Assembly (NCBI GenBank): GCA_946965045.2 | Contig: OX337239.1 | Span: 2,666,001 to 2,730,000, forward strand | DNA: 64,000 bases | Reading direction: 5' to 3' | Source: Epithemia pelagica | Lineage: Eukaryota > Protista > Bacillariophyta | Shown: positions 8,015 to 40,919 of the stretch, piece by piece | How positions within the stretch are numbered: position 1 is the first letter of the stretch | Layout: every line of letters starts with the position of its first letter | The notes under the pieces: model-generated | Seen by the model: only the letters and a program-made list of their open reading frames with translations | Database searches by the model: none | What the model was told of the DNA's origin: nothing | Translations under genes and position numbers: made by a program

Positions 8015-8615
8015 GTCCCCTCAACATAGCATCCATAGCCCACATAGCTTGCTAGGATTGCTAGGTTGTTGCGAAATTTCGGGCAGGATCACATTTTCCG
8101 GAAAAAATCCAAAATCCGTGAGAAAATTTTGATCGGTCGCATGTTACACTGCACATCCAATAACAGCCTCAAGTACTGCGTGGTAACTGGTAACAGATGC
8201 TGTTAGATTTCTTGCTGCGTATTACAAGCTGAGTTCAGGGAGTATGTTCCTGACGTAGACCCCTCGTAGATTTAGTACCATTTAGTATAATCCTTAATAG
8301 CGTTCGGCCTTACTAGTGAATGAAAGTGTCCGACTCGAGACTTCCCAGTGTCTTAAGAAAATAAGTTATTTGTCTTGGTGTGTTGTGTGACAGCTTCCGA
8401 ACGCTAGAATTTCGTCCAAAATGATGAAGAAAACGGTTGTTGTCTAACGACCATGGTGGACGGCCATCCCAACCGTTCGAGATGTTGCCGAGCTGCATCC
8501 GGATGCTTTAGGGTTTACTTGAACCACCCCCAATGGGGCAACATCTCAAACGGTTGGCATCATCCTCAATAATTCGATCATCCAACTCATCCCACGCAAC
8601 ACGGTCTACAACAGG

Positions 8616-11600
8616 ATGGAACGAAATTTTTCTGGGAAAGATATTCTTGACGTCTTTAAGACGCGATGCACCCGATCCTCGTTCGGATTCTGCAACAAGT
8701 GGATCCAAGACACCGAGATTGTAGGATACCTGAGAACTTGGTTGCCAGGGCTGTCGACAATCAGATTGAATTCTCTTTTCTCTAGAGACATTGTCCTTAA
8801 ACCCATTTTCAAAAATGAGGTGTCGGAACCAAACAAGTTTGGCTGGTACCGCCACAAAATCACAATCAATAAACAAAGATACACATTCTTGTATATAAGC
8901 TCCGACACAACAAAACTGCCAGTGATGTTGAACGATCACCAAGAATGGCTGGAGGCTGCAGCCGAGAATGTGATTCGGCGGTCGGGACGAGAGAAGCCAA
9001 CGAAGCGAAGGAACGAAGACTCACCAGGGGTACATGAAGGCACGGCAACTGTATCCAAGCAAGCAAGGAACACTACAACACCACCAGCAATGAAGAGCAC
9101 TGCAACGCAGCAACATGGTCAACCGCCACAAATTGGAGACAGCCCTACCGAAATGCAAACGTCACCACCTCACGACAACACAAATCAGGTGCTTGTTGGA
9201 GCAATCCAACATCCTGAATTGGCCACAGACGAAATCGGCCATGACCATCCACAGAGTTTGCCGATTGGTTTTTCAGTTTTCGAGTGTGAGATGATCCAAG
9301 GTTTATCGCAACAAATGGAAAGTGCCTATTTTGATGAGCCAAGGAACCGTAGGCTCTTTGCCGGCAAATGTGATTCTCCAGATCGTCAAAACGAAATCTT
9401 GAGCGATGGATAGAAACCCTTGAAAGGGCCATTTCCAACGTGGAGGCACTTCCGAATGTGGTTAACAAGGGAGACATCTTCCCCCTCAACCAGGAACAGC
9501 AACAGAGGGTACTGCTCAAGGCAACGTATTTACAACTTTCTTATAAGATAGCGTTGCTTGATATGCCACACGGTCGTACATGGCTGAACTGCATAAGCGA
9601 AGCCATTAGCAAAATGGAACAGATTTATGGTGAAAAAGTAAAAAAAAACATCCCAAGACCATTGCTCGTTTTCACAGGTACTTTCGGGAAAACGACAGTT
9701 TCCCTCATCCCAACTACCACGTTCATATTGGGAAAGAGCCATCGCCCGTCTTATTCGTTCACATACCTGAAGCAAAGGTAAAGTTTGAATGCTGGGCAAA
9801 GGAAAACCTGAGCACTCTTACAACAGAGTCTGCTCTAATGTACCTGAGGACAACATTGCTTCCGGATATGCATACCATGATCGTACAAGAGTGCATGGAT
9901 ACGAATACAACGCCAGTATCGTACGAGGACTTCTTGGCATCGATGAAGCTTTCCACCATTTCGCAAAGCACAGCATGGCGATGTATTGCTGCTGCAGGGT
10001 TCGTGTTCAAGGAACACACAAAAACATACTTCACTGATCGACACGAAAATGCTGAGAATGTTGCCCACAGAGCTGCTTTTGTCAAGAAGTACTTTAAGTG
10101 GGAAGAGCTGTCGTATCGGTGGGTGCAGCTCCCTACCGAGGATGCAATCAAACTTGAAAACGAAGGGAATGCGGGCAAGGAGAAGCTCTTGCCAAACAGC
10201 TTTGTATTTGAGTACACTGATGTAACAACATGCAAGCAGATGCGGGAGTACCATGTTGATGCCTTCCCAAGCGAATTTGAACGGTACATCAAACCAGAAA
10301 ACACAATTCACAATGGAAACTTGTCACACAGGTTTCCCTCCGACCGCAAACCTGTCATCCTCATCGGCCAGGACGAATCGATCTACAAGCAGTTTTCCTT
10401 CTCGTCTAAGGCATGATACACTAAAGATGGTGCAACTAAAATGCTGCCAAAGGATGATGGACATGGGATGATGATCAGCGCTTTTGTAAGCCGATCATGG
10501 GGCTTCCTTATGAACGGAAACCCGTTGCTTGCTGCAAGTCTATTTCGGATTAATGAACTCCGTCTCCATGCGACACACAACAAATACGTCTCTACCGAGG
10601 CTGCAGTGAACCTCAATGGTCACACTGCCAAGACTCCAATTACCAATGCCCAACCGTTCACTCGCTTTTTTGAATACGGAGCAGATAAAGAGGGATATTG
10701 GAATTATGAATACATGGCCTTGCAGTTGGAGGATATTGTCGATTGCCTCGTGGTCATGTTCCCCGCCCATGACTTTGTCTTTTTGTTCGACCAAAGCAGT
10801 GGTCATGGAAAACAACAATCCGATGGGTTAAATGCTCTGAACATGAATAACGACTGGGGAGGAGCTGTTCCCAGCATGCGGGACACACAAATTATTGATC
10901 AAGCTTGCCTTGGCCCGTACAACCATGACAACAAACTACGAGTTGGTGACGTACAACACCTCGTCTATCAGGAGAACGATCGTGGTCCAGTTGCTAAAAA
11001 AGGCCATCGTCTCAATGACGCGCAGCGTGTCGCATCGAAGAATACACACCGAACTGGTAGAAAGAAAAAGCGCAACCTCACAAAGAAGGAGCTCATGGCA
11101 AAACTTGTCCGGGTCATGGGACCTGGAATGCAATGTTCATTTCAATCGAAAAATGCTGGTGAACTACAGGACCTTTGTAAACGCTCCAACATTGCAACGG
11201 TGATTGAAGATGATGTGATCGAGGAAGGCTGGATGAATGCTGCAAAAGGGCTCTTTCAAGTGTTATGGGAGCGGGGGTGGATAGACCCTAACAACATGAT
11301 CAAGTACGTCAAGACAACCAGAGATGCATGGTTGGAAGCGGATAAGAAGACTGTGAAAGAGGCCTATCAGGCGGACTACAAAAAGTACTCTATGGTTCAT
11401 CTGATGAGCGAATGCTCCGATTTCAAGAACGAAAAATCTGCAATGGAGAAGCTGGCGGAAGACTTGTCTGAACGACATCGTTGCAGGATCGAGATTCTCG
11501 TATCGACCAAGTATCACTGTGAAATGGCCGGTGAGGGGATCGAGTATGGCTGGGGTTACTCAAAAAAAGTCTTTCGTGCTTTCTCACTGAATGAGAAGAA

Positions 11601-11883
11601 AGACAAAGCTGCCTTTTTACGATGTTTGACAGCGAGCCTGAAGAAAACAACACCCGAAATCATGCGGAAAATGTCAGCAAAGGCACGTCGCTATATGCTC
11701 GCGTACTTGTTATACGATCAAAATTCCAACAACAGAGACTATGCAGCTGCGGGCCTCTCGTATACCGAAATTGAAAAGATGTCAAAAGCAATCAAGTGTC
11801 ACCGATCCGCTTTCGACCAAGATCATGGCTTCATCTCACGTCTCTGGAGAGAAACGCAAGGATCTGGTGCAGTAGAAACCTGA
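8616..11883 (+). pseudogene. Large IS630/Tc1-like DDE transposase, disrupted
   Basis: Motifs IGQDES (D), FLFDQSSGH (D), STKYHCEMAGEGIE (equivalent to PxLNPIE) and KGLFQVLWERGW. Broken by a frame change near 9375-9413, a frameshift at the A9 run 9640-9648, and an in-frame TGA at 10414-10416 (Trp expected). Confidence 0.8.
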
Positions 11884-12295
11884 TCTAATCTCCATTTATC
11901 ATCAAAATGCATGTAACTTAACTATTTATAACAGCAATCCATTTTATTGAATGTATTTCTTGTCAGTTATTGGTATCAATGATCACTTCCGTGTTGCGTG
12001 CTCGTGTTGCGTGTTGGATTATCAGTTTATAAGTACCTCGAAAATGTGAGAGAGCGAGAAAATGGACGATTTTCGGAGCAGACCTCGCGCGAAACACGCC
12101 TCCCTCTCCGAAAACGCGCACGCATCGCAAAACTGGCACGCAAATCCTTTAGTAACTCAGCCCACATACCAAAACTTTACCGTTTTTTAGTAAGTGAGCT
12201 CAAGATTTTTTTTTTGGAATGTGAACTGAGGGCTGAGGAGAATGCTGCGTTTCGTGTTTCTTGTGTTTCGTGTTTCGAGTTTTTGCGTTTCGACC

Positions 12296-15181
12296 ATGGG
12301 GAAACCAAGCCCTAAGAAACAGTATTCAAAAGCAGGCGCTCAAAAACGAGACAGCATGAGTGACAAAGGAAATCTTGACGCTCTTATACTTGCAATAGAT
12401 GCAGCGGAAGAGCAGTCAGCCAAAGCAGCAGCGGCGCCCAAAGCAGCAGCAGCCGCAGCACCCGAAGCAGCAGCAACAGACGAAGCGACAACAACAAAGC
12501 ACCATCGGTTTCTTTCGGATCAAGACTTTGCCGAAGTGAAGGATAAAAAGCTTGCAGATGTTCGGCGTGGCCATCCAGAGAAGGACCACAGCAAACAGTA
12601 TTCGGAAACTCAAATGCGGCAGCTCCTCACCGATACGCGCACAGCGGACTACAAGAAAGGCGTCGAGGAAGTGGAGAAACTCCCTTCTCGTTCTGGACGG
12701 GATCCAATCAGGACTTTCACCGAAGGCCTCAAGACGCTCTCCAAGATCAAAGACAGTGCTGTACTTGCCTGTGCTATGGGAGAGTATGTCTCACGGAAGA
12801 TTTCAGCCACTTTTTCGGTCCAAGAAGCTCCAATTCGGAAGCCCGGTTCAGGCTTGCAAAAGGGGAAGATTGTGCCACTTTCGGGTGGAATGGGTCTCCC
12901 TGTCAAGAAGAACAGAAAACATACCTTCCCGATCGGCAAGCATGTCGGTTACACATTTGCGAACAATCCGGTAGTCAAGATCTACCTTGGAAAAGTGCTT
13001 CTGTTTGAGGTGAAGGAGTCAAAACTCCCAGGCGCCGGGTTTGGCGTTTTTGCAGTTCGGACAATCAAAGATGGTGAAGTGATTGGCGCGTACACGGGAA
13101 ACGACGTCACGTCTCGGACAGTTGTACCCAACGAGTACGCGATTCAGTTCGGACGTGACAATCGAAGGCTTCAAGCAGACAACAACGATCACTTTGGCAT
13201 GGGGCTGCACTTAATCAACGACCACCTACACCATCGGTACGGTACAGACAATCCACCGGATGAATCGGATGATCAATACAACGTGAGAATCATGCCGAAT
13301 CTTCTAGTCAAGGCAATCAAGCCGATCGAAAAGGGCAACGAGCTGTCTTTGTTTTATAACCTTTCGGACGAATCGCCGACGTCCTCCGAACAGGTTATCC
13401 GACCGTCGACGAGAGGTGACGACGACGAAGACGAGGGAAAGAAACGCGGTCGACCCAGTGATGAAAATGAAGACGACGAGAAAAAAACAAAGAAGGCTTT
13501 CGTTACCTCTTCTACTACTGTTTTCCGCCCAGTTGCTGCTGTTGCTCGTCCTCCTGCTCTTCCTTCTCCGCCTCCTCCGCAAGACGTTTCTGGGCACTAC
13601 AATTCGCCCCCTCAGCTGCCACCACATCATCCTCCGCCGTATCATCCTCATCCTCCGCCGTATTATGATCCACCGCATCATCCTCATCCTCCGCCATATT
13701 ATGATCCACCGCATCGTCATCATCCTCCTTCGTATCATTCTCCGCCGCATCATCATCATCATCCTCCTTCGTATCATCCTCCGCCGTATCATCATCATCC
13801 TCCTTCGTATCATCCTCCGCCGCATCATCCTCCGCCGCCGCATCATCCTCAGCCGCATTACCATGGGCATCCCCCGTCCTATATTCAACCCCATTATGGA
13901 GGAGGTTACCAGGGGGCTCTGCCTTTATCGCAGCAACAACAACGCACGACCCAGCCGGTCGTAGGTTCACCGGAGCGTCCGAGCAATCCCGTCCCACCTG
14001 CAGCACAAGCTCAACCCGCCTCTCGACCCGATCGCTCCCTTTCTGGAATGTTAGTACGAGTAATTGCCTTGCCAGAATTTTCAGAAAGTGACACCACGGA
14101 TGACAATTCTTTTGATCAGGAGATGTCGGATGACAATTCTTTTGCTCCGGAGATGAATGCGATCGACGAGTTAATGCAGGAGGGTGAATGGCAAAAGCAA
14201 CAGATGTTGCAAAATAGAGAATTGCGCAAGAAGTATTTCAAATCGCTATACGATAGTGAAAACAAAATCTATCGAGGCTGTTTTTTTACAACGCCGCCAG
14301 ACCTCCTCCAGTTGTTGGAGCAAGTGTGGAAAGGCAAACACCTGAACAGTAAAGGAAAGGGCACCTTTTTCAAATCTGTTCAAGACTACACCCCAAATTT
14401 GTTGATGGCGATGATGGAACATGAGGGCATGATGGCCAACACTCGGTACTTCAACGACTGCGACCCAGAACATGTCCAAAAAGTCACAACAGATTTCAAG
14501 CAATTTCTTGCCTCAGCTCTCCATGGAATGAACTACGCAAAAGATGAATCATTTGCGGACCAAATGAGCATTCACCTTTCGCTTATGAAGACCACTCGGG
14601 AAGAAGTGCAAGAACCTCACATCGACTTCTTGTTCCCGGCCGTAACAGGAAACATGTCCGAGAGTCCAAAAACGCCATCCGGGAAGCAACAAAAAAGCAA
14701 AAGGATGACTCGGCAATCGTTCTCAGATCTACCACTCCGGGAACGCATCCCCTTCATTGTTTTTATGCCCCTGACGGAGGAGGGTATGTCCATTGAATTG
14801 TGGAGCTACCGTGCTGAGAAGCACGAGAACTATACCCATGAGTTGGGTAACGTGGTACAAATCCCGTACGGCAAGTTTCTCCTCGTTCGAGGGGATACTG
14901 TCCATGCTGGTGGCTTTAAGACTGGAGAGCTGGGAAATCCACGTGCACATTTTTACGTGTACCAAGGAAAAGATGGGACCGTCCACGATCCCATGCCAAA
15001 GAACAGCTACAATCTACCTTCTGGACAAAGGCTTTCAGAGTGCTACTTCCATCAAAAGGACATTCCTGGTGATCGCCCACGTGGGATCATTCGGGTTAAC
15101 CTTACGCTCGATGGCCATCGCGTTGCCGTCCAGGGTGATTATCGTAGAGTGCTTCCGGCTACGAAAAAACCTCGTATTTAG
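12296..15181 (+). CDS. Cargo: SET-domain + Pro/His/Tyr-rich linker + C-terminal 2OG-Fe(II) dioxygenase-like fusion protein (about 960 aa, intact)
   Basis: SET at about 13000-13360: SKLPGAGFGVFAVRTIKDGEVIGAYTG...HLINDH...AIKPIEKGNELSLFYN. Dioxygenase at about 14560-14960: QEPHID...FMPLTEEG...VRGDTVHAGG...NPRAHFY (HxD...H...R). The ORF track starts at 12242; the second ATG at 12296 is also plausible. Confidence 0.75.
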   Translation: MGKPSPKKQYSKAGAQKRDSMSDKGNLDALILAIDAAEEQSAKAAAAPKAAAAAAPEAAATDEATTTKHHRFLSDQDFAEVKDKKLADVRRGHPEKDHSKQYSETQMRQLLTDTRTADYKKGVEEVEKLPSRSGRDPIRTFTEGLKTLSKIKDSAVLACAMGEYVSRKISATFSVQEAPIRKPGSGLQKGKIVPLSGGMGLPVKKNRKHTFPIGKHVGYTFANNPVVKIYLGKVLLFEVKESKLPGAGFGVFAVRTIKDGEVIGAYTGNDVTSRTVVPNEYAIQFGRDNRRLQADNNDHFGMGLHLINDHLHHRYGTDNPPDESDDQYNVRIMPNLLVKAIKPIEKGNELSLFYNLSDESPTSSEQVIRPSTRGDDDEDEGKKRGRPSDENEDDEKKTKKAFVTSSTTVFRPVAAVARPPALPSPPPPQDVSGHYNSPPQLPPHHPPPYHPHPPPYYDPPHHPHPPPYYDPPHRHHPPSYHSPPHHHHHPPSYHPPPYHHHPPSYHPPPHHPPPPHHPQPHYHGHPPSYIQPHYGGGYQGALPLSQQQQRTTQPVVGSPERPSNPVPPAAQAQPASRPDRSLSGMLVRVIALPEFSESDTTDDNSFDQEMSDDNSFAPEMNAIDELMQEGEWQKQQMLQNRELRKKYFKSLYDSENKIYRGCFFTTPPDLLQLLEQVWKGKHLNSKGKGTFFKSVQDYTPNLLMAMMEHEGMMANTRYFNDCDPEHVQKVTTDFKQFLASALHGMNYAKDESFADQMSIHLSLMKTTREEVQEPHIDFLFPAVTGNMSESPKTPSGKQQKSKRMTRQSFSDLPLRERIPFIVFMPLTEEGMSIELWSYRAEKHENYTHELGNVVQIPYGKFLLVRGDTVHAGGFKTGELGNPRAHFYVYQGKDGTVHDPMPKNSYNLPSGQRLSECYFHQKDIPGDRPRGIIRVNLTLDGHRVAVQGDYRRVLPATKKPRI
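13600..13880 (+). repeat. Coding low-complexity repeat (CATCCTCCGCCG-like units; HPPPY/HHHPPSY)
   Basis: Visible tandem degenerate repeats inside the SET-2OG ORF. Confidence 0.9.
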
Positions 15182-15932
15182 ATCGCGAACAAAGAAGCCG
15201 ATCAAACTTAGATCTTTCCTTGTGGTGAAAGTGTGTTATTGTTGAAAAAGAATACCATGGTACGTTGAGTTGCAGTATGACATTAAGATTTACTAGTTTA
15301 TTCCTTCATATTATACTTTAGTACATTGTCGTGTTGTGTCGAAAACGCAAAATATGAGATAAGAATCATAGCTCGTCTGGGACCAATCACAAACTCCCTC
15401 GTACATCCATACGAGGCGTGCCCGCAAACCGGGACCCAACTACCGACACTGGCAAGCTGGATAACGACGATGACGATGATGACGAAGAGGACAAACAGGA
15501 TGAGCGATGATAGCTACAACAAGGACGACTACAATACAACGACGACAATAATAGCCACGACAATGACGAGGACTTGGACGACGACAATGATGATAATCAC
15601 AACAAGAATGACTGTAGAAGCACTACCATGATGACAAATCGATTCATATTTAGTGATTAAGGATACCTAAAACGTCCATCAGTAGATATCTAGTACGCCT
15701 CGTCCTCATGATCCAAGTAATCGGGACCAAAAAGCCCGTTTTGCTGCATACCGATGAAGTCTTCTTGGGTCTCGAGAAATCCATCATCGGCATACGAATC
15801 AATGGATGTCCGGTATGCACGGGAAGGATTGCTAAAGAAAAAGGAGGAGACGACGGGATGTTTTCTCCCAATGCCAGCGACTCATTCAAAGTCTGGCGAG
15901 GGTCTGTCGCTCCACTTTCCTTCACCTGTTCC

Positions 15933-16595
15933 TCAGCAATCCGACGCTGGAAAGCATGCTTCTGGGAGGGGGTCAGTGCGAAAGCTCGAGACGCCACCTT
16001 CGGGGAAGAAGTTACTTTCTTCGGGGTCACATAAGACTCTGGAGTCTTGTTCTCGACGTCGTCCTCCTTCTTGATCTCCTTCTCGGGCTTGCTGTCGGGC
16101 TTGTTGTCGGGCTTGCTGTTGGGTTTGGTGTCTGTGGCAGCAGAGGGCGCGTCGTGAGAAAGGGAGACTCAAAACCAACAATGAACAATCAAACTTACCT
16201 TCTTTGCCGACAGCCTCGATCGCAAGGAGCTCGGCCGCGATATCCGACAGGTTAGCGCATTCGACGTCCTTGTTGCTGACGAAGAACACTGGGATACCAT
16301 CTTCATCCCCAATGGTGAGTTGCCACTGTTTTGCGCGCTCGTGCCACGACGAAGGACCCTCAAGGTTGAAGGTCACATGCTTCTTTGTCGAAGCGGGAGA
16401 CTTTGTCGTCGTCGTCTTCTTCTTCTTCGACGTTTTGTTGTCCACGGCCGTCTTTGTCTTCATTTTCTTGTTTGCCTTGTTTCCCTTGTTTCCCTTGTCG
16501 GAGGGAAATGCGGTTGTGGAGGGAGCTGCGGCGGAGTCCTCCTGCTCCTTCTTCGCAGACTCAGCTCGTTTGGTAGCACTACGCGTCTGGCGCAT
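15933..16595 (-). CDS. Cargo ORF of unknown function (Lys/Thr-rich N-terminus), possibly continuing into 15650-16030
   Basis: 220-aa ATG-initiated ORF inside the TIRs; no recognised domain. Confidence 0.4.
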   Translation of the reverse strand: MRQTRSATKRAESAKKEQEDSAAAPSTTAFPSDKGNKGNKANKKMKTKTAVDNKTSKKKKTTTTKSPASTKKHVTFNLEGPSSWHERAKQWQLTIGDEDGIPVFFVSNKDVECANLSDIAAELLAIEAVGKEGKFDCSLLVLSLPFSRRALCCHRHQTQQQARQQARQQAREGDQEGGRRREQDSRVLCDPEESNFFPEGGVSSFRTDPLPEACFPASDC

Positions 16596-16747
16596 CGTTG
16601 GGATTCGTTCGTTTGATTGTTGTGTTTGTTTGTTTGATTGTTGCCCGCTCTCCGTTCTTGTGTCTTCTAGGGAATCCCCCCGCGCTCATTCGTGAACAAT
16701 ATCGGCGCGCGGCACAAAATCAACTTGCAGCATGAAGCAACTTCCGA

Positions 16748-17320
16748 ATGACCCGCCGTGCAATGGAACAATCAAACAGAGACGACAGGAAGAGGCAAGG
16801 AAGAAGAAACAAGATGACCAACATGAGGACGAAGTTCGAGTTCAACGAAGAGGATGGCCGTGAGGGTGGTGCTGGTCTCCCGTTGAAGTCGTGCTTTTAT
16901 GCCAGCGATGTTTGCGCGCTCATCGGGCCCATGTCGAGAAACAAGGACACTGGCCACAACATCGTCGACCGTGGCCATCTGCTTGTGCAGCGGGAGCTTG
17001 CGACCGACTACCTACGGATTGCAGTCTTTGACCGGGATGCAACAAGCGAGCATGAGGAACCAGCGTTGGTTGTTCCAGTTGGGTTCATTGCTCTGTCGCA
17101 CCTGGACCAGGTCTCTGGAAAGACGAGCAAGAACGGACCTCCCATGGGACGCATCCGCCTCTACACACGCTGCTCCATCAACCCTAAAGCCTGCATGGAA
17201 CCCCAGGTCGTTACAATCTACATGGGCAGAAAGGATATGGATCGCTTCAACATTTCCCTTGGTGCGATGATGCTCAAGCACCCGCTTCAAAATCTCTTCT
17301 TTAATCATCAACAAGCCTAG
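16748..17320 (+). CDS. Cargo ORF of unknown function (190 aa)
   Basis: ATG-initiated ORF with globular-looking composition inside the TIRs, divergent from 15933-16595. Confidence 0.45.
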   Translation: MTRRAMEQSNRDDRKRQGRRNKMTNMRTKFEFNEEDGREGGAGLPLKSCFYASDVCALIGPMSRNKDTGHNIVDRGHLLVQRELATDYLRIAVFDRDATSEHEEPALVVPVGFIALSHLDQVSGKTSKNGPPMGRIRLYTRCSINPKACMEPQVVTIYMGRKDMDRFNISLGAMMLKHPLQNLFFNHQQA

Positions 17321-17950
17321 ATAGTGAACAATGTAGCAGCGTTTTATGATTATCATTTGAGTAGGATCTTCATTCTCTATGAATACGATCTAATTCTATA
17401 GTTGTGTTACGTTTACCGTACAATACATTGCGTTCAGGTACGGCTGTGTGAGTCACAACAACGAAAAGAACATCAATCTTTGTTGTGAACGACGCAACTT
17501 CTAGTCTAAGTTCCATATATCTAACGAGAAGAATATCAATTTTTGACGTGAACAACGCTACAAGTGTTCATAGTCTTTGTTCTATCTTCTATCATTCGAT
17601 TCTACAATAGAGGTGCATTGGTTGCACCAAGTTTTGCCGTTAGTCGCCGTAGTAAATCGCGCGGCGACCACCTTCAACTAGATAAAACGACACCTACAAA
17701 ACGAATGCAGCACCGACATCGTTCTCCATGCTCAACCCATGAATGGAGAAGAGGTTCAGAGCATGGGATCATGGAGCCGTCTCCTATTTGGCAAGAGATC
17801 GGTCAAAAGGACCGTTCACCATGGTCAATTTTTGGTAGAACGGTAGAGGCATAAAAAGAAGGGCTATATTAAGGGGATGGCTCGCGCGGATTACGTAGAT
17901 TTCCTACTGGAGCGCTACGTCAGGAACATTCTGTCTGAACTCAGCTTGTA

Positions 17951-19840: not shown

Positions 19841-20029
19841 GTACTACAAAAATGGCCGGGACCAATCGGCTAAGTAATCCAGAAAAATCGCCAGCCCGCA
19901 TCGTACCGCCCCCGGTCAAGAAGGGACCGACGGACGAACGAGGAACGGACATTGCACCCAGGGTCTGGAATTCAAAAAGTGGGACTTTAATGACTTAAGG
20001 GAATGTAACTTAAATTTAGCTTGAATTAA

Positions 20030-20290
20030 GCCATTCAATTGAAATCCTCCTCCTTTACTTTCATTGAATTTCACAATCCACTCAACTCAATACCGATTTT
20101 TTCTTGGATTCACTATTCCGATTCAAGTCTCATCATCTCAGACGGGGAATGTCAATTCCCTAATTCAATTCCCAATTCACTAAAATAGACACTTCCCAAT
20201 TCCATTCAATTCACTTTATCAGACGATATCAATTCCCAATCCAATCCAATTCCTTCTTACTCACTACAAGAATTTGAGAATCCAATCAAT
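20030..20290. repeat. Left subterminal array of CAATTC/CCAAT motifs of the hAT
   Basis: Many short repeats, mirrored in inverted orientation at 26620-26830. This is typical of hAT transposase-binding arrays (inference). Confidence 0.6.
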
Positions 20291-20562
20291 TTTCTCCTAC
20301 GCACAGATGGAATTACCATTCTCCCCCCAATGTGTCATGTGAATTACGTTTCTATACAATATCACACAGTGACCCTACCTTCAACCGCCTCATCTTTGTG
20401 ACTTGTGACACTCTCTTACCTCTCACCTCTACCGTCCATCCACCAATCCTTCAACAGTTCATTGTCTGTTGCAGCTTGCAACACATGTTGTCTGGCTTGA
20501 TTGTGCGTCTTAATCATCTTCAAAGCCCAGCATCCTTGTCCACCCTGTCTGGATCTACCATC

Positions 20563-24327: not shown

Positions 24328-24470
24328 TAAATACAGAACATGACGGAACAGAAAACGAAAAAGACTACATACGACTACATACGAGAACGACTACATACAA
24401 GATACATGCGAGAACCAAAAAGAAAAAGAACAAACAAGGAAAAAGAGATAGTAACTAATAAGAAATTGAC

Positions 24471-26527: not shown

Positions 26528-26619
26528 ACAGGCGTACCTAACATCTTCTTAGTTGTATGTTGTACGACTATAATGGTGGAGAAAGGATAAGGAGTACAGT
26601 GTGTGACTGTGAGTCATAA

Positions 26620-26830
26620 TTCAGAGAATGAATGGAATTTGTGAATGTGTAATTCATTTGTTCTGAATGGTGGTGTGAATTGGGAATGATTCATTCAATT
26701 CAAATTCGTTCGAAAAGGGAATTGGGATTGGAATTTAATTCCAATTGGTTCGAAAAGGGAATTGGGGATTGAATTCAATTCAAAGGGTATGAAATAGGGG
26801 AATAGTAAAGTTAAGTGAATTTATTGATTG
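26620..26830. repeat. Right subterminal GAATTG/GGGAATT array of the hAT
   Basis: Inverted counterpart of 20030-20290, including a duplicated TTCGAAAAGGGAATTGGG. Confidence 0.6.
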
Positions 26831-27246
26831 TAAACATAATTGACTTTGGTAATTAAGTTCATTTACTATCCGTAAATTTGTACACTTTCAAGATTATTTC
26901 AATTGTGTATATGTCGTGAAGTGAATCGTTAATTCTTAATTTAATTCTAAACTGATTGGAAAAGTGAATAATCAATCTACATTCAAGTTTAGATGGCACA
27001 TAAAATGACTTCCAGACCCTGATTGCACCCAAAGAAGATCCCAAGAGGTTTGCAAGGCTACGTCGACGTTTGTTGAGATAGTCAGAATGACTACTCCCAA
27101 CAAACAAACTTGGACGATTCGGCCAAATTCCAACCACCGCGAGAAATTGTGCGCACAAAATGGTCTACGAGCACATTTCCCAGACGCGAGGAACTTTTCC
27201 AACACACACAAACATACATCATTTCTCGATAGAAGAAAGAGAAAAA

Positions 27247-28865
27247 ATGACTGGGCGTTACTCCTCCTCCAAAGGTAGAACCACCCTGTTTGTGTGTTTG
27301 GCATTGGTTGCCAGCGCAACGTTGGTATGGCAGTTCCAACTGGGGCTGGAATTGTCCCTCCCGGTGGCGGATTCTTCCTCCTTGTCCAGTAACCTTGTTG
27401 CGCTAGAGTGGGACCGTCCTGTTCGGGTGGACCCCAACGATCCCACAACCCCTGCCGTCGTCCAAATCGAGCATCCTGCCGCAGCCAACAGCAACACACA
27501 CAACAACAACAAACACAAGAACAACAAGACAGTGTGGTGGCCCCGTTCCTTGATTCACGATGAGACCTTGGAGTGGGATTCGCATGTGTACCGTCCCTGG
27601 TTGGATCTGAATGCACCATCTCCTCCCGCCGTAATTTTGCTCACGAGTTTTGGATGGAATCATGTCAATCAAAAATGGGCCTTGACCATTCCTCGCAGTA
27701 TTCGGGAAACCGAACTGCTTACGGGTGTCATTAACCACCCTTGGTTCCATCCAACGCTATGGGAGGAATTGGACCAGGCCCAAGGAAACCTTACATCAAC
27801 AACAACAAAGCTACCTCCCAATACACGCATCTACATTTTTCTTGATCGACAACAATGTGGCGACTCCAATTATCCTGTCTATGGTAAGGGTCAGGAACCA
27901 AATATGGATGTCCAATTTGGTCGACCCTGGAAGCCTTATTCTGGACGTACTCCCTTTGATAATCCTCTCCTTTCAAGTCTGACTTTCAAAGAGCTCCGAT
28001 CCCGTCATCACTCATTCCAAGCTACGGCCATTTTGTTCAATTGCAATGGTGGGGGTATTCCGGGTGTTTGGAATCCTTACAATCGCATTACAGGATCCCT
28101 CGCGAATGCTTCTTACCTTTCCATTGCCACACTCTCGTCCCTCATTTCTCGTGTCAAGGAAGATCGAGATCAGGGATTGGCACCGCCGATACCCAAACCA
28201 GTGAATTTGACCGATACACAAGTCCAAGATATACACACATGTGCGGCCGAAAACAAGCGGCCATTTTACTTTGTCTACGCTGGCAATTTTCGTTCTGGTG
28301 ACAATGCCGACTTTAATCGCCGTCATGGTGGAGCGCGTGGTTCCTATCGACGCTTTAATGACAATCGACGCATTTTTGTGTCACGGTATTTCAACCGTCA
28401 AGAATTCAACCAATCGGCCTTGTCGAATTACTCGTATCAAGATTTCATGGCCCGGGCCGTCTTTGCCTTGGCGGCACGGGGGGATAACAAGTTTTCGTAT
28501 CGCTTTTCCGAAGTTTTGTCGGCCGGTGCCATACCCGTGGTGCATGCCGATGATTGGGTGTGGCCCTTTCGACCGGAAGTGATCAATTGGACCGAGTGTG
28601 CCGTGATTCTTCCCGAAAAGGATGCCGGCAACACTACCTTGGCGTATTTGGACACGATTTCTCTGGAACAACGCTGTCGCATGCGACAGGCGTGTTATCG
28701 CATTTACAAGGACTACGTCGAAACCACGGTAGGAACCATCAACGGGTTGGTCCAAGGACTCGAGCGTGTGCAGACGCAACAGCAAGGAGGAGGATCGTTG
28801 CTGAAATTACAAGGTGTCCGGTGCGATGAATTTGCTAACGCCAGCCGTGACTGCAATCTCCAACG

Positions 28866-28869
<4 letters not shown>
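27247..28869 (+). CDS. Exostosin-family (GT47-like) glycosyltransferase, type II membrane protein, intronless
   Basis: N-terminal TM segment TTLFVCLALVASATLVW. C-terminal SYQDFMARAVFALAARGDNKFSYRFSEVLSAGAIPVVHADDWVWPF...WTECAVILPEK. ATG at 27247 is the first in-frame ATG preceding the TM segment apart from 27160. Confidence 0.85.
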
Positions 28870-28897
<28 letters not shown>

Positions 28898-33976: not shown

Positions 33977-34101
33977 GTCCCCGCGAACAAAATCGGGGTG
34001 GGCAACTTCGTTTAGTTCGTCATGTCAGCAGAGGCCGGTCCAGTACGTTGGACTATTCTTCAAAAGGGGCGATCCCATTTTGGATCTAAAAAGGGGGTCT
34101 G

Positions 34102-35084
34102 CTACCACATGATACGTTGGGCCAGGAATCGCAATCGAGGTCCGGGTAGCAGTTTGGTTAGGATATCGGCAAGATTCGTTTCACCTTCTTCCCATGCAAT
34201 GCGCACAAGTCCAGCAGCTTGCGCTTCACGAGTCCGATGATAAGCAATTGCGTTGTGCTTCTTCTTTAGGACTGATTCCGGCTGCGTCGAGTTCTTAAAC
34301 ACAGATTCATTGTCGCAAAACACATTCGTCTCTCCATCCAACGGGATACCCATCATTCGCAACTTATAACGAAATGCTTCAATCATTTCAATGGCAGTTT
34401 TCATTGCCACGAACTCACTGCCAAATGTAGACGTCTCAACAGTGTTTTGTTGTTTTGAATACCACATGATCGGTGCTCGTTGCAAGAACAGTAGGACTCC
34501 TATTTGAGAGCGCCGTGTGACACGACATCCAGCATGATCAGCATCGACAAAGCAAGTCGTGGTGACAGCGTTTCCACGCGGTGCTGGTGCGTTTGGCGGA
34601 ATCGGCTCGGCAGCATCAGGATAATACTCAGACCAATCCGGTCGGGTAAAACGTGACTTGTCGAAGTCAGGGGTTGTGTCGTCGAACACAATGGCGGATT
34701 TATCGTACTTCTTCAGATACGCGAAGATGTGCAACGTTTGCTCGAGATGTCCTTCTCGTGGATTCGCCATAAAACGGGACATATGGGAGACTGCGGTTGT
34801 AATATCGATACGACCGAGTTCAACAATCCAACGGAGAATACCGATTAGTCCTTGGTAATAGTTCGCACGTCTTGCGTGGAGTTCAGGAGTCGCATCCAAT
34901 TCTGGGCGATATCCATCGGCGATCGGCGTCATCACTTTTGACTTCAGCTTTTCTCCGGATTTCTCCAGTTCCGTCTCGACTTCGGCAAGAGCACGCTTAC
35001 AATACTTGTCAGCGGACATGGCCCAACGATCACAGTTTGACGGATCTTGCGTGTCGGGTATGGTATAACGCCGAATTTTGGATC
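34102..35084 (-). pseudogene. 3' part of CoDi pol (RT C-terminus + RNase H), separated by the nested insertion
   Basis: YYQGLIG, FVDADHAG, SEFVA, CDN, NLADILTK. Rejoins 40920+ in frame (DEYLGS-KIRRY) when 35085-40919 and one GATC are removed. Confidence 0.92.
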
Positions 35085-35971
35085 TGTTACTCAATATTTC
35101 AACGCAAAGGTTATTTCGCGCATGAAAAAAAAACAGATTAATATGCAGTTCGGCAAATCCTAGCATTATTTTTCCGTACTGTAAAACCTAACGTTTTTTC
35201 AATACCTATCGTTCATTTTCATTTCTAAAAAATATTTGGAGCTGCCCACAAATCGTCTGTTTTCTTGCTCCATGAACAATGAATATCCATGAAACTCACG
35301 TGTTTGATGGTTCTGATAGTTCTCTTGAAGATGTTACCGGTAGGTTCGTGAGTAATCAACAATCTTTCCCAAATCTCCCTTTCAGAATATTTGACCGCCA
35401 TTGTCAGTTTTTGCTTTGTGTCGTCTCATTTTTCCCCCAAGTCATTCACATATGACTTGTCTCGCCAGAGATTTGTATTTTTTTGATTTGTTGAAGCTAT
35501 TTTCTGAAATATCCTAATATGGACCCATCAAATCGGCACAAAAATCCAACAGATTAATATTTTTTCATCCTGACTTCTAACATATTCGAATTTTTGTTTC
35601 GATTTGTTTCCGATACAAACAAATCAACGCATTTGTGACATTCCATACATTTATGCCCCAAGTATTTCAAATTGGGGCGTCGTTTTGGCGTGACACTGGT
35701 CCTCTGTCTGTTGGTGTTGCACACCTCTTTTGCACATTGGCTGTTCAACTCTCTCTTTCTCCTCTTTCAACTGTCGTGTTTGACACTGAGACACTTTCAT
35801 TGGTACCTCCGTTTGTTTCATATTCTTCCAAGTTGATACGGAATTCGTTCGGCGCAAAAGACATTGTGGTAGCTTGGCTGACTTGTGGTTGGAGCAGAAA
35901 CTGTAGTAGCTCAACCAACGAATTCCGTTCCTCAAGAGCTCTCCAAGAAGTGGTACCTTGTAAGTTGTATC

Positions 35972-38530
35972 ATGTCTGGCCGACAGAACAAGAAAAGAAA
36001 AGAGACCGAAGACCATGACTTGGAGGAGGTGGTAATTACCAAAGAAGACATGAAATTGCTTCGACCCTTGCTCAACAAACTTAAGCGACAGAAGAAGACC
36101 AAGGAAACTAGCCTATCTGACATTGAGGAAGAAGGCAGCACTTATGAGGAGGAGAAATCCAACATCTCATCCGACTCCTCTCTTACAAATGTTGCATCAA
36201 AACAACATTCTTCTACGTCAAAGCAACGTTCCCCTACTGCTTCAAATAAGGCTGCCACTGTGACTACTGATGGCACAAAAAAGAAAAGAGGGAGACAGAA
36301 AAAGAGTCCTCCAAAAAAAGATATTTCCAAAAGAAACAGACATCATTCACGGCAGTCATCATCTCCTGAAAAGAATGTATCTTCAAAAGACCAAACCGAA
36401 GAGACGGCCAAAGATTCCCCCAACCCCCAACCTGGTCATGATACGGAAGTAGTACCTGACAATTTTGATGGTAATCTCAACGAAGAACATAGACTTCGTT
36501 TCAACCTTGCTGTCTTTGGCAACTCTTTTACGGACCCTTCCTCGATGGAACCAGTCTCTGCAGGATCAACATCAAGGAATTCCCAAGAAATGTCTCGGTA
36601 TCGTCTGCAGCAAGAGATTTACATTCGTCGGCATTGGGAATCTGGAGACCCTAACGCTGCTCCACCAGAAGATGACAGTGCACCAGATCCGAGAACGGGC
36701 ATTGGCTTTAGAAAGTTGCATCCAATTGGGCGTAACACAAAATATCAAAAACGGGAAGTTAGGACAATTCCTTTGGAGAACAACAAAGTGGAATATGCCT
36801 TGTTCCATGAAGGTCGTCGTGTTTGTTCTGCAGAGCAAGTTTTCGATGTCATCCAGGAAAGACACGGACGAACCGGTCATGCTCTAAACGAAGAAACGAC
36901 ATATAATTTCATCAAAGACGATTATCAAAATATTACTATGAGACAGGTGAAACAGTTTATCAATGGATGCCCTCAATGTGTCTTACGAAAAAAAAAACAG
37001 GTGCCTCACAAGGGGGCTTCAAAACCAATACGGTCTTTCGGTTTTAGAGACCGTTTCCAAGCTGATCTTATAACAATGACTCAGGAAGGAAAAGAAGGGG
37101 ATAAAGATGTGTACGGAATTGAAATGAAGTTTATCCTCTCCTGCAAAGATCATTTCACCCAGTTCGTCATGTTGGCGGCCATTCCGAGTAAAAGCACGAA
37201 AATAATAGCCAATCACTTGGGTATTATGTATGGAATCATGGGCTTTCCCACGATTTATCAAACTGATAATGGGAACGAAGTCTGTGGCAATGAGGTAGTG
37301 AGGCTTGTGATGGAAAATAATCCACACATTGACACAATTACAGGACGTCCTCGTACTCCTCGAGAACAAGGTTCCGTGGAGAATGCAAACAACGGCATTC
37401 GGAATACTGTCCAATCGATTGTTTCGGAGGAATGGGCTCGTGGGAATACGGAGTTCAACTGGACAATGGCACTGGGAAGAGCAATGGGAACATTGAACGG
37501 TGCTTTTCGACGGACAACAGCAAATGCCATTTCGTCATACGAAACTGTCTTTGGAACCAAATTCTACTCTCCCAATTCAGAAGCTGTGAAAGGATTATCT
37601 TCAACAGAATTGAGAATAGCCGGGACCACAGCGGTTGAACGGTGTCTCCGTACCCGCAGTAGCGCCCTCACAGAAAAATATGCGATTTGTGGTGAGATTA
37701 CTGAAGCCGACATTGAAGACCTTGGAGACCTTGCATCGCCGAGAGTGCAATACCTAATGCACAACTATAAACAAACACATAAAGAAGCGGCAGATGAAGA
37801 CTTCATGCTGATACAAAATTCCGATTGGTCACTGGTACCTGAAGGTCTTAGACCTATATCAGTTCCAGATGAACATGATATGGTCAGAGAAAGTGAAGAA
37901 ACTGTGGGCGACTTAGATTCTAAACCAAAAGCTGTTGATTTGGCCCGAAAACAAAAACAAACGGCTACGGCGAATCAAGACAGTGAAGTACCTGACGATG
38001 ACCTTGATTGCAAACCCAAAGCAGTGGACAATCAGACATTCCGAAAGGAGATCGAGAGTCAGAAGACACAGGAACTAGTAAGTTCCTCAGATCTGGCGGG
38101 TCTGTTGTATTGCCAACCCGTATTGGCAACCCAAAAAGCAGCCCAACAAGAGATTTCAAAACAGGATACCAATAAGTCATCAAATGTCGACAACAAGCCA
38201 GATGATACCAAGAAATCATCAAATGTCGATAACAAGCCAGATGCAAGTTTTGACGCGTCGGACGGGAAACAAAATGTTTTGAAACAAGGTGTCGACATAT
38301 CAAAACACAAGGTTTATTTATCAAAACTTCGTTCCGACAAGAAGCCAGATGCAAGTTTTGACGCGTCGGACGGGAAACAAAATGTTTTGAAACAAGGTGT
38401 CGATATATCAAAACATGATACGGACATACTGGAACAAAATTCTGATCTGTCAAAACAAGATCATAACATGTCAAAAGAAGAGAATGACAGCAGATCAAAA
38501 CACCAGATTTTACGAAACAATAATTCCTGA
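35972..38530 (+). CDS. Integrase-like transposase (HHCC + DDE; KRBA2/SCAND3/GingerRoot-like)
   Basis: HGRTGH...CPQC; FQADLITM (D); YQTDNGNE (D); GRPRTPREQGSVENAN (E, spacing DD37E). First ATG at 35972. Confidence 0.88.
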   Translation: MSGRQNKKRKETEDHDLEEVVITKEDMKLLRPLLNKLKRQKKTKETSLSDIEEEGSTYEEEKSNISSDSSLTNVASKQHSSTSKQRSPTASNKAATVTTDGTKKKRGRQKKSPPKKDISKRNRHHSRQSSSPEKNVSSKDQTEETAKDSPNPQPGHDTEVVPDNFDGNLNEEHRLRFNLAVFGNSFTDPSSMEPVSAGSTSRNSQEMSRYRLQQEIYIRRHWESGDPNAAPPEDDSAPDPRTGIGFRKLHPIGRNTKYQKREVRTIPLENNKVEYALFHEGRRVCSAEQVFDVIQERHGRTGHALNEETTYNFIKDDYQNITMRQVKQFINGCPQCVLRKKKQVPHKGASKPIRSFGFRDRFQADLITMTQEGKEGDKDVYGIEMKFILSCKDHFTQFVMLAAIPSKSTKIIANHLGIMYGIMGFPTIYQTDNGNEVCGNEVVRLVMENNPHIDTITGRPRTPREQGSVENANNGIRNTVQSIVSEEWARGNTEFNWTMALGRAMGTLNGAFRRTTANAISSYETVFGTKFYSPNSEAVKGLSSTELRIAGTTAVERCLRTRSSALTEKYAICGEITEADIEDLGDLASPRVQYLMHNYKQTHKEAADEDFMLIQNSDWSLVPEGLRPISVPDEHDMVRESEETVGDLDSKPKAVDLARKQKQTATANQDSEVPDDDLDCKPKAVDNQTFRKEIESQKTQELVSSSDLAGLLYCQPVLATQKAAQQEISKQDTNKSSNVDNKPDDTKKSSNVDNKPDASFDASDGKQNVLKQGVDISKHKVYLSKLRSDKKPDASFDASDGKQNVLKQGVDISKHDTDILEQNSDLSKQDHNMSKEENDSRSKHQILRNNNS
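38234..38415 (+). repeat. 74-bp direct repeat (period 108, in frame) in the transposase tail
   Basis: 38234-38307 versus 38342-38415, one mismatch. Confidence 0.9.
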
Positions 38531-38963
38531 AGGCATCATTGGAGATAAACAGTCAAAAACATCCATTTGGTTTACACATGATAAATACAACTTACTTGAT
38601 GCCTCATCGCCTCTTGGACCAGAACGGCGTTTGTTACGGCAACAGATTTTGGATAAAAGTTTCGATCAAACCAAGTATAAAATCATTTCTGTTCGAGAAG
38701 CACATCCTGTTACCTACAGCAAGCATCATTCTATCAAGAAACAAAAGACAACTTTTGAAAGAAGGAAAATAAAGTGCAATTGCAAACGACTATGGCTTCA
38801 ATGCAAGACTAATACTTGTGGATGTCGAAAAGCTGGAATTGTCTGTACGCATCTGTGTAAATGCAACAAAAGTGATTGCATGAACAGGCATATTCACGGG
38901 GTAGTACTGGAAGATGAAGTCAAGGCCGGAAATGAGGTACCGAAAAACCAACCCACTGTGTGA
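38397..38963 (+). CDS. Cys-rich CXC/tesmin-like module, probably the frameshifted or spliced C-terminus of the transposase
   Basis: CNCKRLWLQCKTNTCGCRKAGIVCTHLCKCNKSDC in the +1 frame overlapping the end of the transposase ORF. Confidence 0.6.
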   Translation: MSIYQNMIRTYWNKILICQNKIITCQKKRMTADQNTRFYETIIPEGIIGDKQSKTSIWFTHDKYNLLDASSPLGPERRLLRQQILDKSFDQTKYKIISVREAHPVTYSKHHSIKKQKTTFERRKIKCNCKRLWLQCKTNTCGCRKAGIVCTHLCKCNKSDCMNRHIHGVVLEDEVKAGNEVPKNQPTV

Positions 38964-40726
38964 CCAATTGTTCCATCGGAACCAAAGGCACACTCATGTT
39001 TGGAAGTGCAATGACGGATGACACGACCGTCGAATAGAATTGTCACGCCATGTGATAATTCAATCACCAGTCCATTATAAGTACGGCCATCTCTTTTCAG
39101 CAGAACATCTGGAAAAATGAAAAACCAGTTCTTTGTAGTATGTGGCATGGTTTCGGAAAATACAACGAAGCAAACACTAGCGTCGTTGACATCAATATGG
39201 GATGAGTTTTCCAAATCAACACTTACTGCGATGTTGGAACAAAATCCGTCTGTCCCACCCAAATCTTGAGGGACATCAATATCTGCCTATTTACGCAAAG
39301 ATGTAAACAAAGGCAATATTCCCGGATAGAGTTGTTGAATTCTTGTCCCAACCGTGGAGCATAACTGCCCTACATTATTGTTGAGTGATGTATTGTCCAT
39401 GGAGATTGGTATTGATTTTAATTGTTGCTGATAACGGTTGAACGTGATTCCATACCCACTCATTTGTCCGTTGTCTCCTGTGTTTCTCCTGGAGTTCCCA
39501 CAGCTTGAAACGTTCTTGTCTGAGACGTATAAGTTTGCCACAGAAGCAAAGTCATGATACAGCTTCTCAGACGATGATACATAGGACACAACAATGTAGG
39601 ATTGTCCAACTGGCCGTTTGTTGCTGTCCAAAATAGTAGTCTGGAATGCGTGGATTTGTCTTTCTTCAGATCTTGGGTTTAAAACATAGGCCGAGGAACC
39701 ACGGATGGAACGATACAGTGCACCAGTGACATATCTGCGACAGCCAATTTTATTGGATCCTGACTTTTCAAATAAAGCACGGTAAAATGTACGGCAATCT
39801 TGGATTTTGTTAACAATGTTGTCACCGATACAGTCAGGTGGTAGAAGAGGAGTATCAACATCACCGTCGTCAAATTGAATGCTGTGAATAACTTTGGGCA
39901 ATTCGTTGGAAACAACATAATTGATTGTCCATACTTTGTTTATAGACTTGATGAAGCTTCCCAACGCTGGTTCACCAGTTGTATAAACAAGACGTTACCA
40001 GGAAAGTGGTAATGGAGTAAGTGACGAAGTGGTGATAGATTTGCCAATGCCACACTGTAGTTCACAAAGAAATTTGGAATTGTCCAAGGTAAAGGCAGTT
40101 GTCCAAAATACTGATGCATAGGGGAAAATAATTATGACGGTGCAAAAAATGTGGTCAAATTCAGTAGAACAGAGTTCCCTGGAGGTTCGTGTACGGTGTA
40201 TCACTTCGTAGTAGGGTTGGTTGTACGGAATTCTTGGTTTACGGTGTGTCCTGGACAATGTACAGTCAAGCATGAATGCACCATGCAATTCATGCGTCAG
40301 CTGTAAAGGAATGGCTTCCTGTATTTGTAGGTCATGATGTGATATTGATGAACGTGTCAACTGTAGTTCTTTAAATCCCCGCTTGATTTCTTTGATGAAA
40401 ATAGGAATATGAGGGACACTTGGCCTTTGGAAAGGACGAAGAACAGATTTAAGGTACGGCAAACTGTGTTGGATGAAGGCTTGTTGAACATCATCCCCTG
40501 GTAGACACAGGGAGAACATTTCACAGAGAAGTAATGTGAAGTCGTCAGTATCAAAGCAGTATGGCTCATGTCGGATAGAAGTCTGAGCGGATTGATACAC
40601 ATGAATGATTCCTGGAGGTCGGTTGCGACGAGAAGAGTTGCTCTTATGCTTGGATGAATTCTTTGTCTTCTTCATGATGGACGTATGAAGGGAGGCTGTC
40701 AACGATTCGATGAAGCGAAAGAACAA
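38894..40726 (-). pseudogene. Cargo: TET/JBP-like 2OG-Fe(II) dioxygenase; one reading frame with two in-frame stops
   Basis: ORFs 39995-40726, 39287-39964 and 38894-39262 are in the same frame, separated only by TAA (39995-39997) and TAG (39287-39289). Motifs RRNTGDNGQMSGYG, SVDLENSSHIDVND (HxD), WFFIFP and HGVTILFDGRVIRHCTS (distal His). No obvious distal 2OG-binding Arg. Confidence 0.6.
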
Positions 40727-40919
40727 CGAGTATGACGGTGCTGTGAGGTAAGAAAATCAGTGGTCGTAAACGATGAAAAATGATAGAAAAAATATGGGGA
40801 TTTTGTTTTAATTTGATATGCCGGCGAACAACAAATCAAAACATGACGACGTTTCAATAATTTTCAACAAATCAGCGCAAAGTTTTGATTTGTCGTTTGC
40901 GTCGAAATCTCGGGTAACA

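Follow-up and report, generated by a model that had tools for sequence, protein, structure and literature searches.

Organisation of the locus

The DNA analysed here, called the window, is a stretch of 64,000 nucleotides (nt) from the diatom Epithemia pelagica (contig OX337239.1, positions 2,666,001 to 2,730,000 of the forward strand). Within no more than 33 kb of this single genome lie three unrelated DNA transposons, adjacent to one another, each bearing a gene for an enzyme in addition to its transposase:

8225-17948, element 1, a transposon of unclassified superfamily with inverted ends and a TA target-site duplication; its passenger encodes a SET domain
19959-27021, element 2, a hAT transposon with 16-nt inverted ends and an 8-bp duplication; its passenger is a HhH-GPD glycosylase gene
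35085-40919, element 3, a Ginger-superfamily transposon with 24-nt inverted ends flanked by GATC; its passenger is a TET/JBP-like gene

A reading of the window from its letters alone (the original prediction) had delimited the same three elements by their inverted repeats and target-site duplications. The inverted ends, the duplications (TA in element 1, 8 bp in element 2 and 4 bp in element 3) and the boundaries between copies all agree with it. Further copies were taken from other contigs of ENA assembly ERZ21939226, which is the assembly of the window, giving, with the window included, seven copies of element 1, three of the hAT and two of the Ginger-like element. The earlier claim that the cargo lies inside the element ends is true of every one of them (7/7, 3/3 and 2/2). 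Homology between copies in this same-assembly comparison runs from end to end, spans the cargo and halts exactly at the inverted ends. The three elements are mobile, and recently so, and the cargo is an integral component of each. They represent three autonomous cut-and-paste families, one unclassified with TA duplications, one hAT and one of the Ginger superfamily.

The copies in the window are ageing relics of these families. In the window the Ginger-type integrase and the open reading frames (ORFs) of the SET and glycosylase cargos are still open; the transposases of elements 1 and 2 are broken, as is the TET gene.

The Ginger-superfamily element and its TET/JBP-like gene

The features of element 3 are as follows:

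35081-35084 and 40920-40923, left and right copies of the 4-bp duplication GATC
35085-35108, plus strand, left inverted repeat, starting TGTTA (TGTNR); 20 of 24 positions complementary to its partner at 40896-40919
35885-38530, plus strand, integrase-type transposase, an intact ORF of 881 amino acids; HHCC finger at about 36839-36994 and DDE core at about 37049-37411
38391-38960, plus strand, conserved ORF or exon rich in Cys; 60% identity to L006:11952-12665 (E 2e-67)
38897-40675, minus strand, TET/JBP-like gene, a pseudogene in the window, with stops TAA at 39995-39997 and TAG at 39287-39289

Element 3 is nested in a Copia-type pol (window 34105-35084 and 40924-44119, minus strand), the right-hand fragment of which matches the Pfam profile RVT_2. 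Because GATC might equally belong to a longer inverted repeat, the insertion was tested by deletion: excising the element together with exactly 4 bp rejoins a Copia pol ORF of 1392 amino acids, and no other length among 0-8 bp does so. A second copy of element 3, on contig L005, is about 98% identical, with homology spanning 35087-40926. A diverged Ginger-like family on contig L006 has the same gene order, and its integrase is 45% identical overall and 67% in the core; the inverted ends of the L006 family were searched for and not located.

The Ginger superfamily is recognised by TGTNR termini, a duplication of 4 bp (4-5 bp) and an integrase-like transposase with HHCC and DDE motifs (PMC2836005). 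Both ends of element 3 read TGTTA, the duplication in the window copy is 4 bp, and the HHCC finger is readable in the sequence as HGRTGH...CPQC. The integrase gives a Pfam Integrase_H2C2 match of 0.0014, which is under the cut-off, and an IS481-family core match of 2.2e-7, while its relatives carry both rve (PF00665) and Integrase_H2C2 (PF17921). Element 3 is thus a member of the Ginger superfamily by its termini, its duplication and its HHCC and DDE integrase, and the carrier had been correctly recognised as Ginger-like. With the described groups Ginger1 and Ginger2/TDD (PMC2836005) it shares exactly these features, namely TGTNR termini, a 4-bp duplication and a Gypsy-like HHCC/DDE integrase. 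It differs from them in several respects. Their ends are 40-270 nt long, whereas those of element 3 are about 24 nt; Ginger1 inserts at CCGG (or CCGT) and Ginger2 at RTATAY, whereas the target of element 3 is GATC; Ginger1 has a C-terminal OTU or Ulp1 domain (PMC2836005), neither of which was detected in element 3; and element 3, unlike either group, has a TET-like gene and a conserved Cys-rich ORF. Assignment to Ginger1 was rejected on the absence of an OTU or Ulp1 match, the end length and the target, and element 3 fits neither subgroup cleanly.

In element 3 and in the L006 family alike, the Cys-rich ORF and the TET gene overlap at their 3' ends, tail to tail; the ORF may represent either a third gene or a final exon belonging to the integrase. 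The integrase contains, in its C-terminal tail, a tandem repeat (window 38227-38524; L005:9152-9557), the copy number of which varies between the copies of element 3. The L005 integrase is divided between two ORFs and the TET gene there is whole; in the window the opposite is the case.

The TET-like gene is whole in both L005 (593 amino acids) and L006 (600 amino acids). Its product has no match in Pfam, including Tet_JBP and 2OG-FeII_Oxy_6, and each of these two profiles matches just one of 87 relatives, weakly. A profile search of the PDB with the TET-like alignment also gave no match, and it was a fold search alone that succeeded. The AlphaFold model has a predicted local distance difference test score (pLDDT) of 86.6 and a predicted template modelling score of 0.89. 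When compared with PDB structures, ranks 1-26 are all TET-family proteins, among them human TET2, Chlamydomonas CMD1, Coprinopsis CcTet and Naegleria NgTet1 (6.5e-11 to 8.7e-6), with AlkB next. Among viral models, JBP1/TET oxygenase proteins are among the best named matches, at ranks 2 and 8 of the list.

An exhaustive search yielded relatives in 556 cluster representatives, of which 87 were aligned. H493, D495 and D498 are invariant (H493 and D495 in 87 of 87); H555 is found in 85 of 85, H542 in 75 of 86 and R554 in 74 of 85. The HxD...H triad and the arginine that binds 2-oxoglutarate (2OG) are thus in place, and we infer the identity of the third histidine iron ligand from the alignment. 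The element 3 cargo is accordingly a predicted TET/JBP-like protein, as had been claimed, with support from the modelled fold and from active-site conservation rather than from a sequence profile.

One relative of this protein, 35% identical, has as its tail-to-tail neighbour a Plavaka transposase (Pfam 3.5e-12), and several kinds of transposase may accompany this TET-like family.

Large neighbouring ORFs of 1141-1188 amino acids adjoin TET-like relatives in three metagenomic contigs (L009:681-4106, L010:2896-6414 and L011:4799-8365). One of the three is the Plavaka transposase, and the other two have no Pfam match, no similarity to each other and no likeness to the transposases described here. 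A short ORF next to the TET-like gene in contig L007 was considered as an integrase tail and rejected, having no recognisable resemblance to one.

The hAT element and its glycosylase

Element 2 has the following features:

19951-19958 and 27022-27029, left and right copies of the 8-bp duplication ATTGCACC
19959-19974, plus strand, left inverted repeat, starting CAGGGT; 15 of 16 positions complementary to its partner at 27006-27021
20485-24324, plus strand, hAT transposase, defective, with a frameshift near 22290 and a TAA stop at 23608-23610; dimerisation domain at about 23002-23145
24474-26527, minus strand, glycosylase gene in two overlapping frames (26527-25283 and 25307-24474); HhH-GPD domain at about 24687-25118

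The copies of this element are 97-99% identical, and homology to it in L003 and L004 begins and stops precisely at its ends. The L003 copy, at 98.8% identity, has its own 8-bp duplication, TTCGGAAC, and retains unbroken hAT ORFs of 256 and 1032 amino acids. The dimerisation domain PF05699 (Dimer_Tnp_hAT) scores 23.1 bits against a cut-off of 21.4, and is found in L003 and L002 as well. The above-threshold dimerisation domain, the 8-bp duplication and the short inverted ends mark this element as a hAT.

The HhH-GPD domain that had been read in the cargo is confirmed, PF00730 scoring 33.2 bits against a cut-off of 26.2. The suggested link to the DEMETER/ROS1 type did not survive: among solved structures human NTHL1 comes closest, at 8.6e-20, against just 0.08 for ROS1, and the iron-sulphur cysteines are absent. 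DEMETER and ROS1 form the branch of the endonuclease III/NTHL1 superfamily that excises 5-methylcytosine (5mC). The cargo is instead Nth-like, and it matches the NCBIfam nth family TIGR01083 at 1.2e-23 and 83.7 bits, under the cut-off of 211.7.

With endonuclease III and NTHL1 it shares the HhH-GPD signature, with the catalytic lysine in a GVGxKT hairpin and an aspartate about 20 residues further on. Because this lysine (K161) and aspartate (D180) are invariant in the alignment, the hAT enzyme is predicted to be a bifunctional glycosylase/lyase. It differs from endonuclease III and NTHL1 in lacking the 4Fe-4S cysteines, in scoring below the nth cut-off, in being encoded by a hAT, and in its N-terminal extension of about 400 amino acids, which has no assigned function. 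In the alignment the Cys-x6-Cys-x2-Cys-x5-Cys cluster is missing from the transposon-borne clade and is kept in P0018, a bacterial-type protein.

The extension is homologous to the N-terminus of P0016, a glycosylase 51% identical to the cargo and found on a 7.3-kb contig from a sediment metagenome (L002). Here the gene is convergent with that of a 1363-amino-acid hAT transposase, which is 40% identical to the element 2 transposase, and both genes lie between inverted repeats of 21 nt (104-124 and 7259-7279; 90% matching) that also start CAGGGT. P0016 therefore sits inside a diverged hAT of the same terminal type, and the partnership between glycosylase and hAT is old. The L002 flanks contain no matching 8-bp duplication, and this mismatch may reflect an assembly chimera across copies or decayed flanks.

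The glycosylase gene occupies two frames in all three hAT copies and a single ORF in P0016. The switch falls in an A-rich stretch (window 25283-25307, minus strand), and at the same position in L003 and L004. Candidate causes are a short intron, a frameshift common to the whole family, programmed frameshifting and an assembly error in a homopolymer.

Element 1 and its SET protein

The features of element 1 are as follows:

8223-8224, left TA duplication, with TA at both ends in 7 of 7 copies (window, L001 and L012-L016)
8225-8258, plus strand, left inverted repeat of 34 nt with 5'-CA...TG-3' termini; 31 of 34 positions complementary to 17915-17948; homology to L001 begins here
8616-11883, plus strand, putative transposase, defective, with frameshifts near 9380 and at 9640-9750 and a TGA stop at 10414-10416
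12242-15181, plus strand, SET cargo, an intact ORF of 979 amino acids; SET domain at about 13037-13360, then a Pro/His-rich linker and a C-terminal domain at about 14240-15178
14618-14944, plus strand, an HID...H...R pattern in the cargo, an unverified 2OG-Fe(II) facial triad, kept in 12 paralogues
15936-16685, minus strand, conserved ORF of 250 amino acids with no assigned function, in all copies and 93% identical to the L012 version
17915-17948, minus strand, right inverted repeat, followed by the TA duplication at 17949-17950

The ends of element 1 read CAAGCTG...CAGCTTG, flanked by TA. One full-length copy is found on L001. Five more lie on five contigs with unrelated flanks (L012-L016), four of them 9,724 bp long and one 9,721 bp, and the four mutually differ by just 1-3 bases. 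This near-identity shows that the family has been active very recently. These five elements lie at about 1932-11655 of their contigs, and the right flank reads TAG in all five, hinting at a target broader than TA.

The putative transposase is an unbroken ORF of 1088 amino acids in L012-L016 and is split over three frames in the window (tblastn). A 985-amino-acid version contained within it gave no match in Pfam, NCBIfam or the PDB. No relatives were found in metagenome scans, and blastp comparison with the Plavaka transposase and with the large ORFs that neighbour other TET-like genes showed no similarity. Candidate DDE residues could be picked out by eye only, in QDES, FDQSSGH and CEMAGEGIEYGWG, with spacings of about 139 and 248 residues.

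The element had been labelled mariner-like. This label had to be dropped: the TA duplication is the only feature that fits Tc1/mariner (ITm), no transposase profile matches, and the putative spacing of the catalytic residues is too wide, the second and third of these being separated by about 34-39 residues in Tc1/mariner transposases. TA duplications are also made by the PHISTA and ESTA lineages, and the CMCT/ESTA group (EnSpm-like with TA duplications) is characterised by CA...TG termini and a duplication of 2-5 bp (PMC12730594). The termini and the TA of element 1 agree with this description. An EnSpm-like, ESTA or CMCT assignment was nevertheless rejected on the absence of the zinc motifs, there being no CxxC in the 1088-amino-acid protein and no Hx3-4H after D725. 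The superfamily of element 1 is here left unclassified. About 1.3 kb to the right of the copy on L001 there is an ORF of 476 amino acids (L001:17052-18482, minus strand) with matches to DUF7769 and to a transposase-type helix-turn-helix, which is probably another DNA transposon.

The cargo had been read as a SET domain joined to a 2OG-Fe(II) dioxygenase, of which the first part holds. PF00856 matches at 29 bits (E 1.5e-6; Pfam cut-off 22.4). The nearest relevant sequences in the PDB are the PR/SET domains of MECOM, PRDM16 and PRDM12, together with EZH2, all of them weak; two designed repeat proteins outscore the PR/SET matches and were judged spurious-looking. Of the cofactor and catalytic motifs (NH-S/C and ELxF/Y), read by eye, ELSLFY is present and LINDH stands in place of the usual NH. 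The cargo has 14 members in its cluster at 90% identity.

The dioxygenase part consists of a motif seen by eye. No 2OG-Fe(II) domain was found in the C-terminus by Pfam (full ORF and sub-fragments), NCBIfam or PDB searches, and hhalign gave no match between the C-terminal domain and the 87-member TET-like alignment. An AlphaFold model built from the 12 near-identical paralogues has a pLDDT of 27 and is unusable.

The window copy is a mosaic, being about 99% identical to the young family except over 13224-15150 (the linker and C-terminal domain of the cargo), where identity is 80-89%. To judge from this pattern, the segment seems to have been acquired as a module when the element recombined with a diverged subfamily.

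Selection on the cargo genes and decay at CpG

The TET genes of L005 and L006 are 60% identical, with a non-synonymous divergence (dN) of 0.33 and saturated synonymous divergence (dS); for the integrases dN is 0.54. In the comparison of element 2 with L002, the glycosylases are about 50% identical where the hAT transposases are 40% identical. For the SET cargo dN/dS is 0.42 in the SET domain and 0.44 in the C-terminal domain (dN 0.16, dS 0.36). Catalytic residues are retained, namely HxD and the downstream histidine in the TET-like protein, and the lysine and aspartate in the Nth-like protein. The cargos are selectively maintained and are fixed parts of their elements.

The original prediction had itself named three findings that would tell against it: that the cargos are single-copy, neutrally evolving captures, that they are absent from other copies, or that they belong to metabolic families. 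None of these holds. The cargo proves to be multi-copy and conserved across deep divergence. TET/JBP and Nth are families of nucleic-acid enzymes, and the third protein belongs to the SET family.

Repeat copies had also been said to decay mainly at CpG. Differences between copies are indeed 2.4-8.2 times commoner at CpG than at other sites, but CpG accounts for just 20-37% of all differences, so that the enrichment stands and the word mainly does not. The hAT has an observed/expected ratio of CpG of 0.65, compared with 0.83 for element 3 and 0.99 for element 1. The pattern appears to fit methylation of repeats at CpG by the host.

Proposed function of the cargo proteins

On the basis of the established functions of TET/JBP, Nth and SET enzymes, we hypothesise that each family has a fixed second gene whose product acts on marks or lesions for the benefit of the element, with delayed silencing as the net effect, and we put the probability of this reading at roughly 0.55. 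The marks or lesions would be those placed on repeats by a CpG-methylating host. The predicted activities are oxidation of 5mC (or thymine) in DNA for the TET-like protein, excision of a modified or damaged pyrimidine for the Nth-like glycosylase/lyase, and methylation of a lysine, probably one on chromatin, for the SET protein. The outcome would be a delay in transcriptional silencing, with intact sister copies elsewhere in the genome providing the activities missing from the relics in the window. The same proposal of delayed silencing has been made for the TET-bearing transposons of fungi (PMC12730594). An anti-silencing role of this kind is plausible.

Several observations weigh against this hypothesis. 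According to one report (PMC11572971), TET/JBP enzymes may hydroxylate thymine and can silence rather than counteract silencing. Unlike Nth and DME, the glycosylase has no Fe-S cluster, and the hAT that bears this enzyme has the strongest CpG decay of the three elements, so that the cargo gives no visible protection. The SET domain has, as read by eye, ND where the NH motif is usual, and no relatives of the SET cargo were found outside this genome in searches that included metagenome scans. Between recent copies dN/dS is 0.5-1.3 on few changes, a range which is expected after insertion and is uninformative.

The enzymes might instead serve the mechanics of transposition or repair, with the glycosylase processing or repairing donor and target DNA, the SET protein tethering the element to chromatin or selecting it, and the TET-like protein marking the element's own DNA. 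Accessory enzymes are common in DNA transposons, as with the OTU and Ulp1 proteases of Ginger1 (PMC2836005), and chromatin readers captured by transposable elements are thought to steer targeting (bioRxiv 10.1101/2021.11.30.470311). The retention of the lyase lysine and the lack of protection of the hAT from CpG decay are also in keeping with a mechanical role. Such a role would, however, require a different helper for each of three superfamilies of differing chemistry, relatives of which transpose without genes of this kind, and no role of TET/JBP in cut-and-paste chemistry is known; we regard it as unlikely, though by no means negligible.

It is also conceivable, if decidedly improbable, that the cargos impose or redirect repression or hypermodification, by JBP-like conversion of thymine to 5-hydroxymethyluracil (5hmU) or by lysine methylation of the viral SET type, as self-restraint or in competition with other repeats. 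A dinoflagellate TET/JBP enzyme makes 5hmU and contributes to the silencing of transposable elements (PMC11572971), NgTet1 acts on thymine too (PMC12344493), and the fold search does not separate a 5mC from a thymine substrate. Against this, profile searches of the elements revealed neither a glycosyltransferase nor any other partner for hypermodification, and the benefit to the element would be less direct.

Passive transduplication of host gene fragments or neighbours, carried along neutrally, would agree with the two stops in the TET gene of the window and with a dN/dS near 1 between recent copies. It is contradicted by the full-length unbroken ORFs in sister copies, by conservation across families with saturated synonymous sites and across organisms, by catalytic residues invariant among the 87 relatives, and by homology between copies that is continuous from one inverted end to the other, through the cargo. 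The conservation across families, taken with the dN/dS of 0.44 in the C-terminal domain of the SET cargo, thus makes neutral transduplication very unlikely, and this account is already largely refuted.

The hypothesis of delayed silencing can be taken further, to a mobile DNA-demethylation pathway split over two families. In this more speculative form, which we give little chance of being correct, the Ginger-type TET-like protein would oxidise 5mC (or thymine), the hAT glycosylase would excise the product, the two cooperating in trans to erase silencing, and the third family would add a SET writer.

Relation to known systems

TET/JBP cargo has been described in at least ten lineages of fungal DNA transposons, hAT included; the TET-bearing carriers comprise Kyakuja/Dileera/Zisupton, Plavaka, hAT7, PHISTA, ESTA, IS3EU, EnSpm and Helitron (PMC12730594). 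In common with these, the locus described here has a DDE transposon with a separate intact TET/JBP gene inside its ends (intact here in the sister copies), and a relative of the element 3 protein is encoded beside a Plavaka transposase. The occurrence of several such families in one genome is likewise shared. The present case differs in that the carrier is a Ginger element, outside the lineages listed in PMC12730594, in that the host is a diatom rather than a fungus, in that the element 3 protein is too diverged for the Pfam Tet_JBP profile, and in that the genome also has transposons bearing a glycosylase and a SET protein.

Fusions of SET and other chromatin domains to transposable elements have been surveyed (bioRxiv 10.1101/2021.11.30.470311). 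Element 1 resembles SETMAR and such fusions in that a SET-type domain is physically tied to a DNA transposon that duplicates TA. It differs in that its SET protein is encoded by a separate gene within an active multicopy element, not by a host fusion gene, and is not joined to the transposase, and in that its transposase is not detectably mariner.

The original prediction had treated cargo of this kind as apparently undescribed for these elements in diatoms. This stands in part. TET cargo and SET fusions to transposable elements are already documented, whereas no earlier description was found in the searched literature of a hAT paired with a HhH-GPD/Nth-like glycosylase, or of TET genes in diatom transposons. 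What is new is the Ginger-superfamily carrier of a TET-like gene, the conserved pairing of a hAT with an Nth-like glycosylase, and the presence of three different enzyme passengers in one genome.

The locus extends to new types of transposon a strategy that has been documented chiefly for the TET genes of fungal transposons. Transposons that bear epigenetic enzymes would be waging the silencing arms race with the host's own chemistry. It is worth adding that the SET passenger sits in a very young family, with its five near-identical copies of 9.7 kb. The identification of intact copies provides a testable system, in which it can be asked whether oxidases and glycosylases of transposable elements remove methylation, whether they do so for their own family only, and whether they complement each other across unrelated elements.

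Other features of the window

An ORF of the exostosin GT47 family (27160-28869, plus strand) begins some 140 bp beyond the right end of the hAT and is the sole clearly host-like gene seen in the region. Additional Copia-type pol ORFs are present in the window at 408-6929 and 53022-55112.

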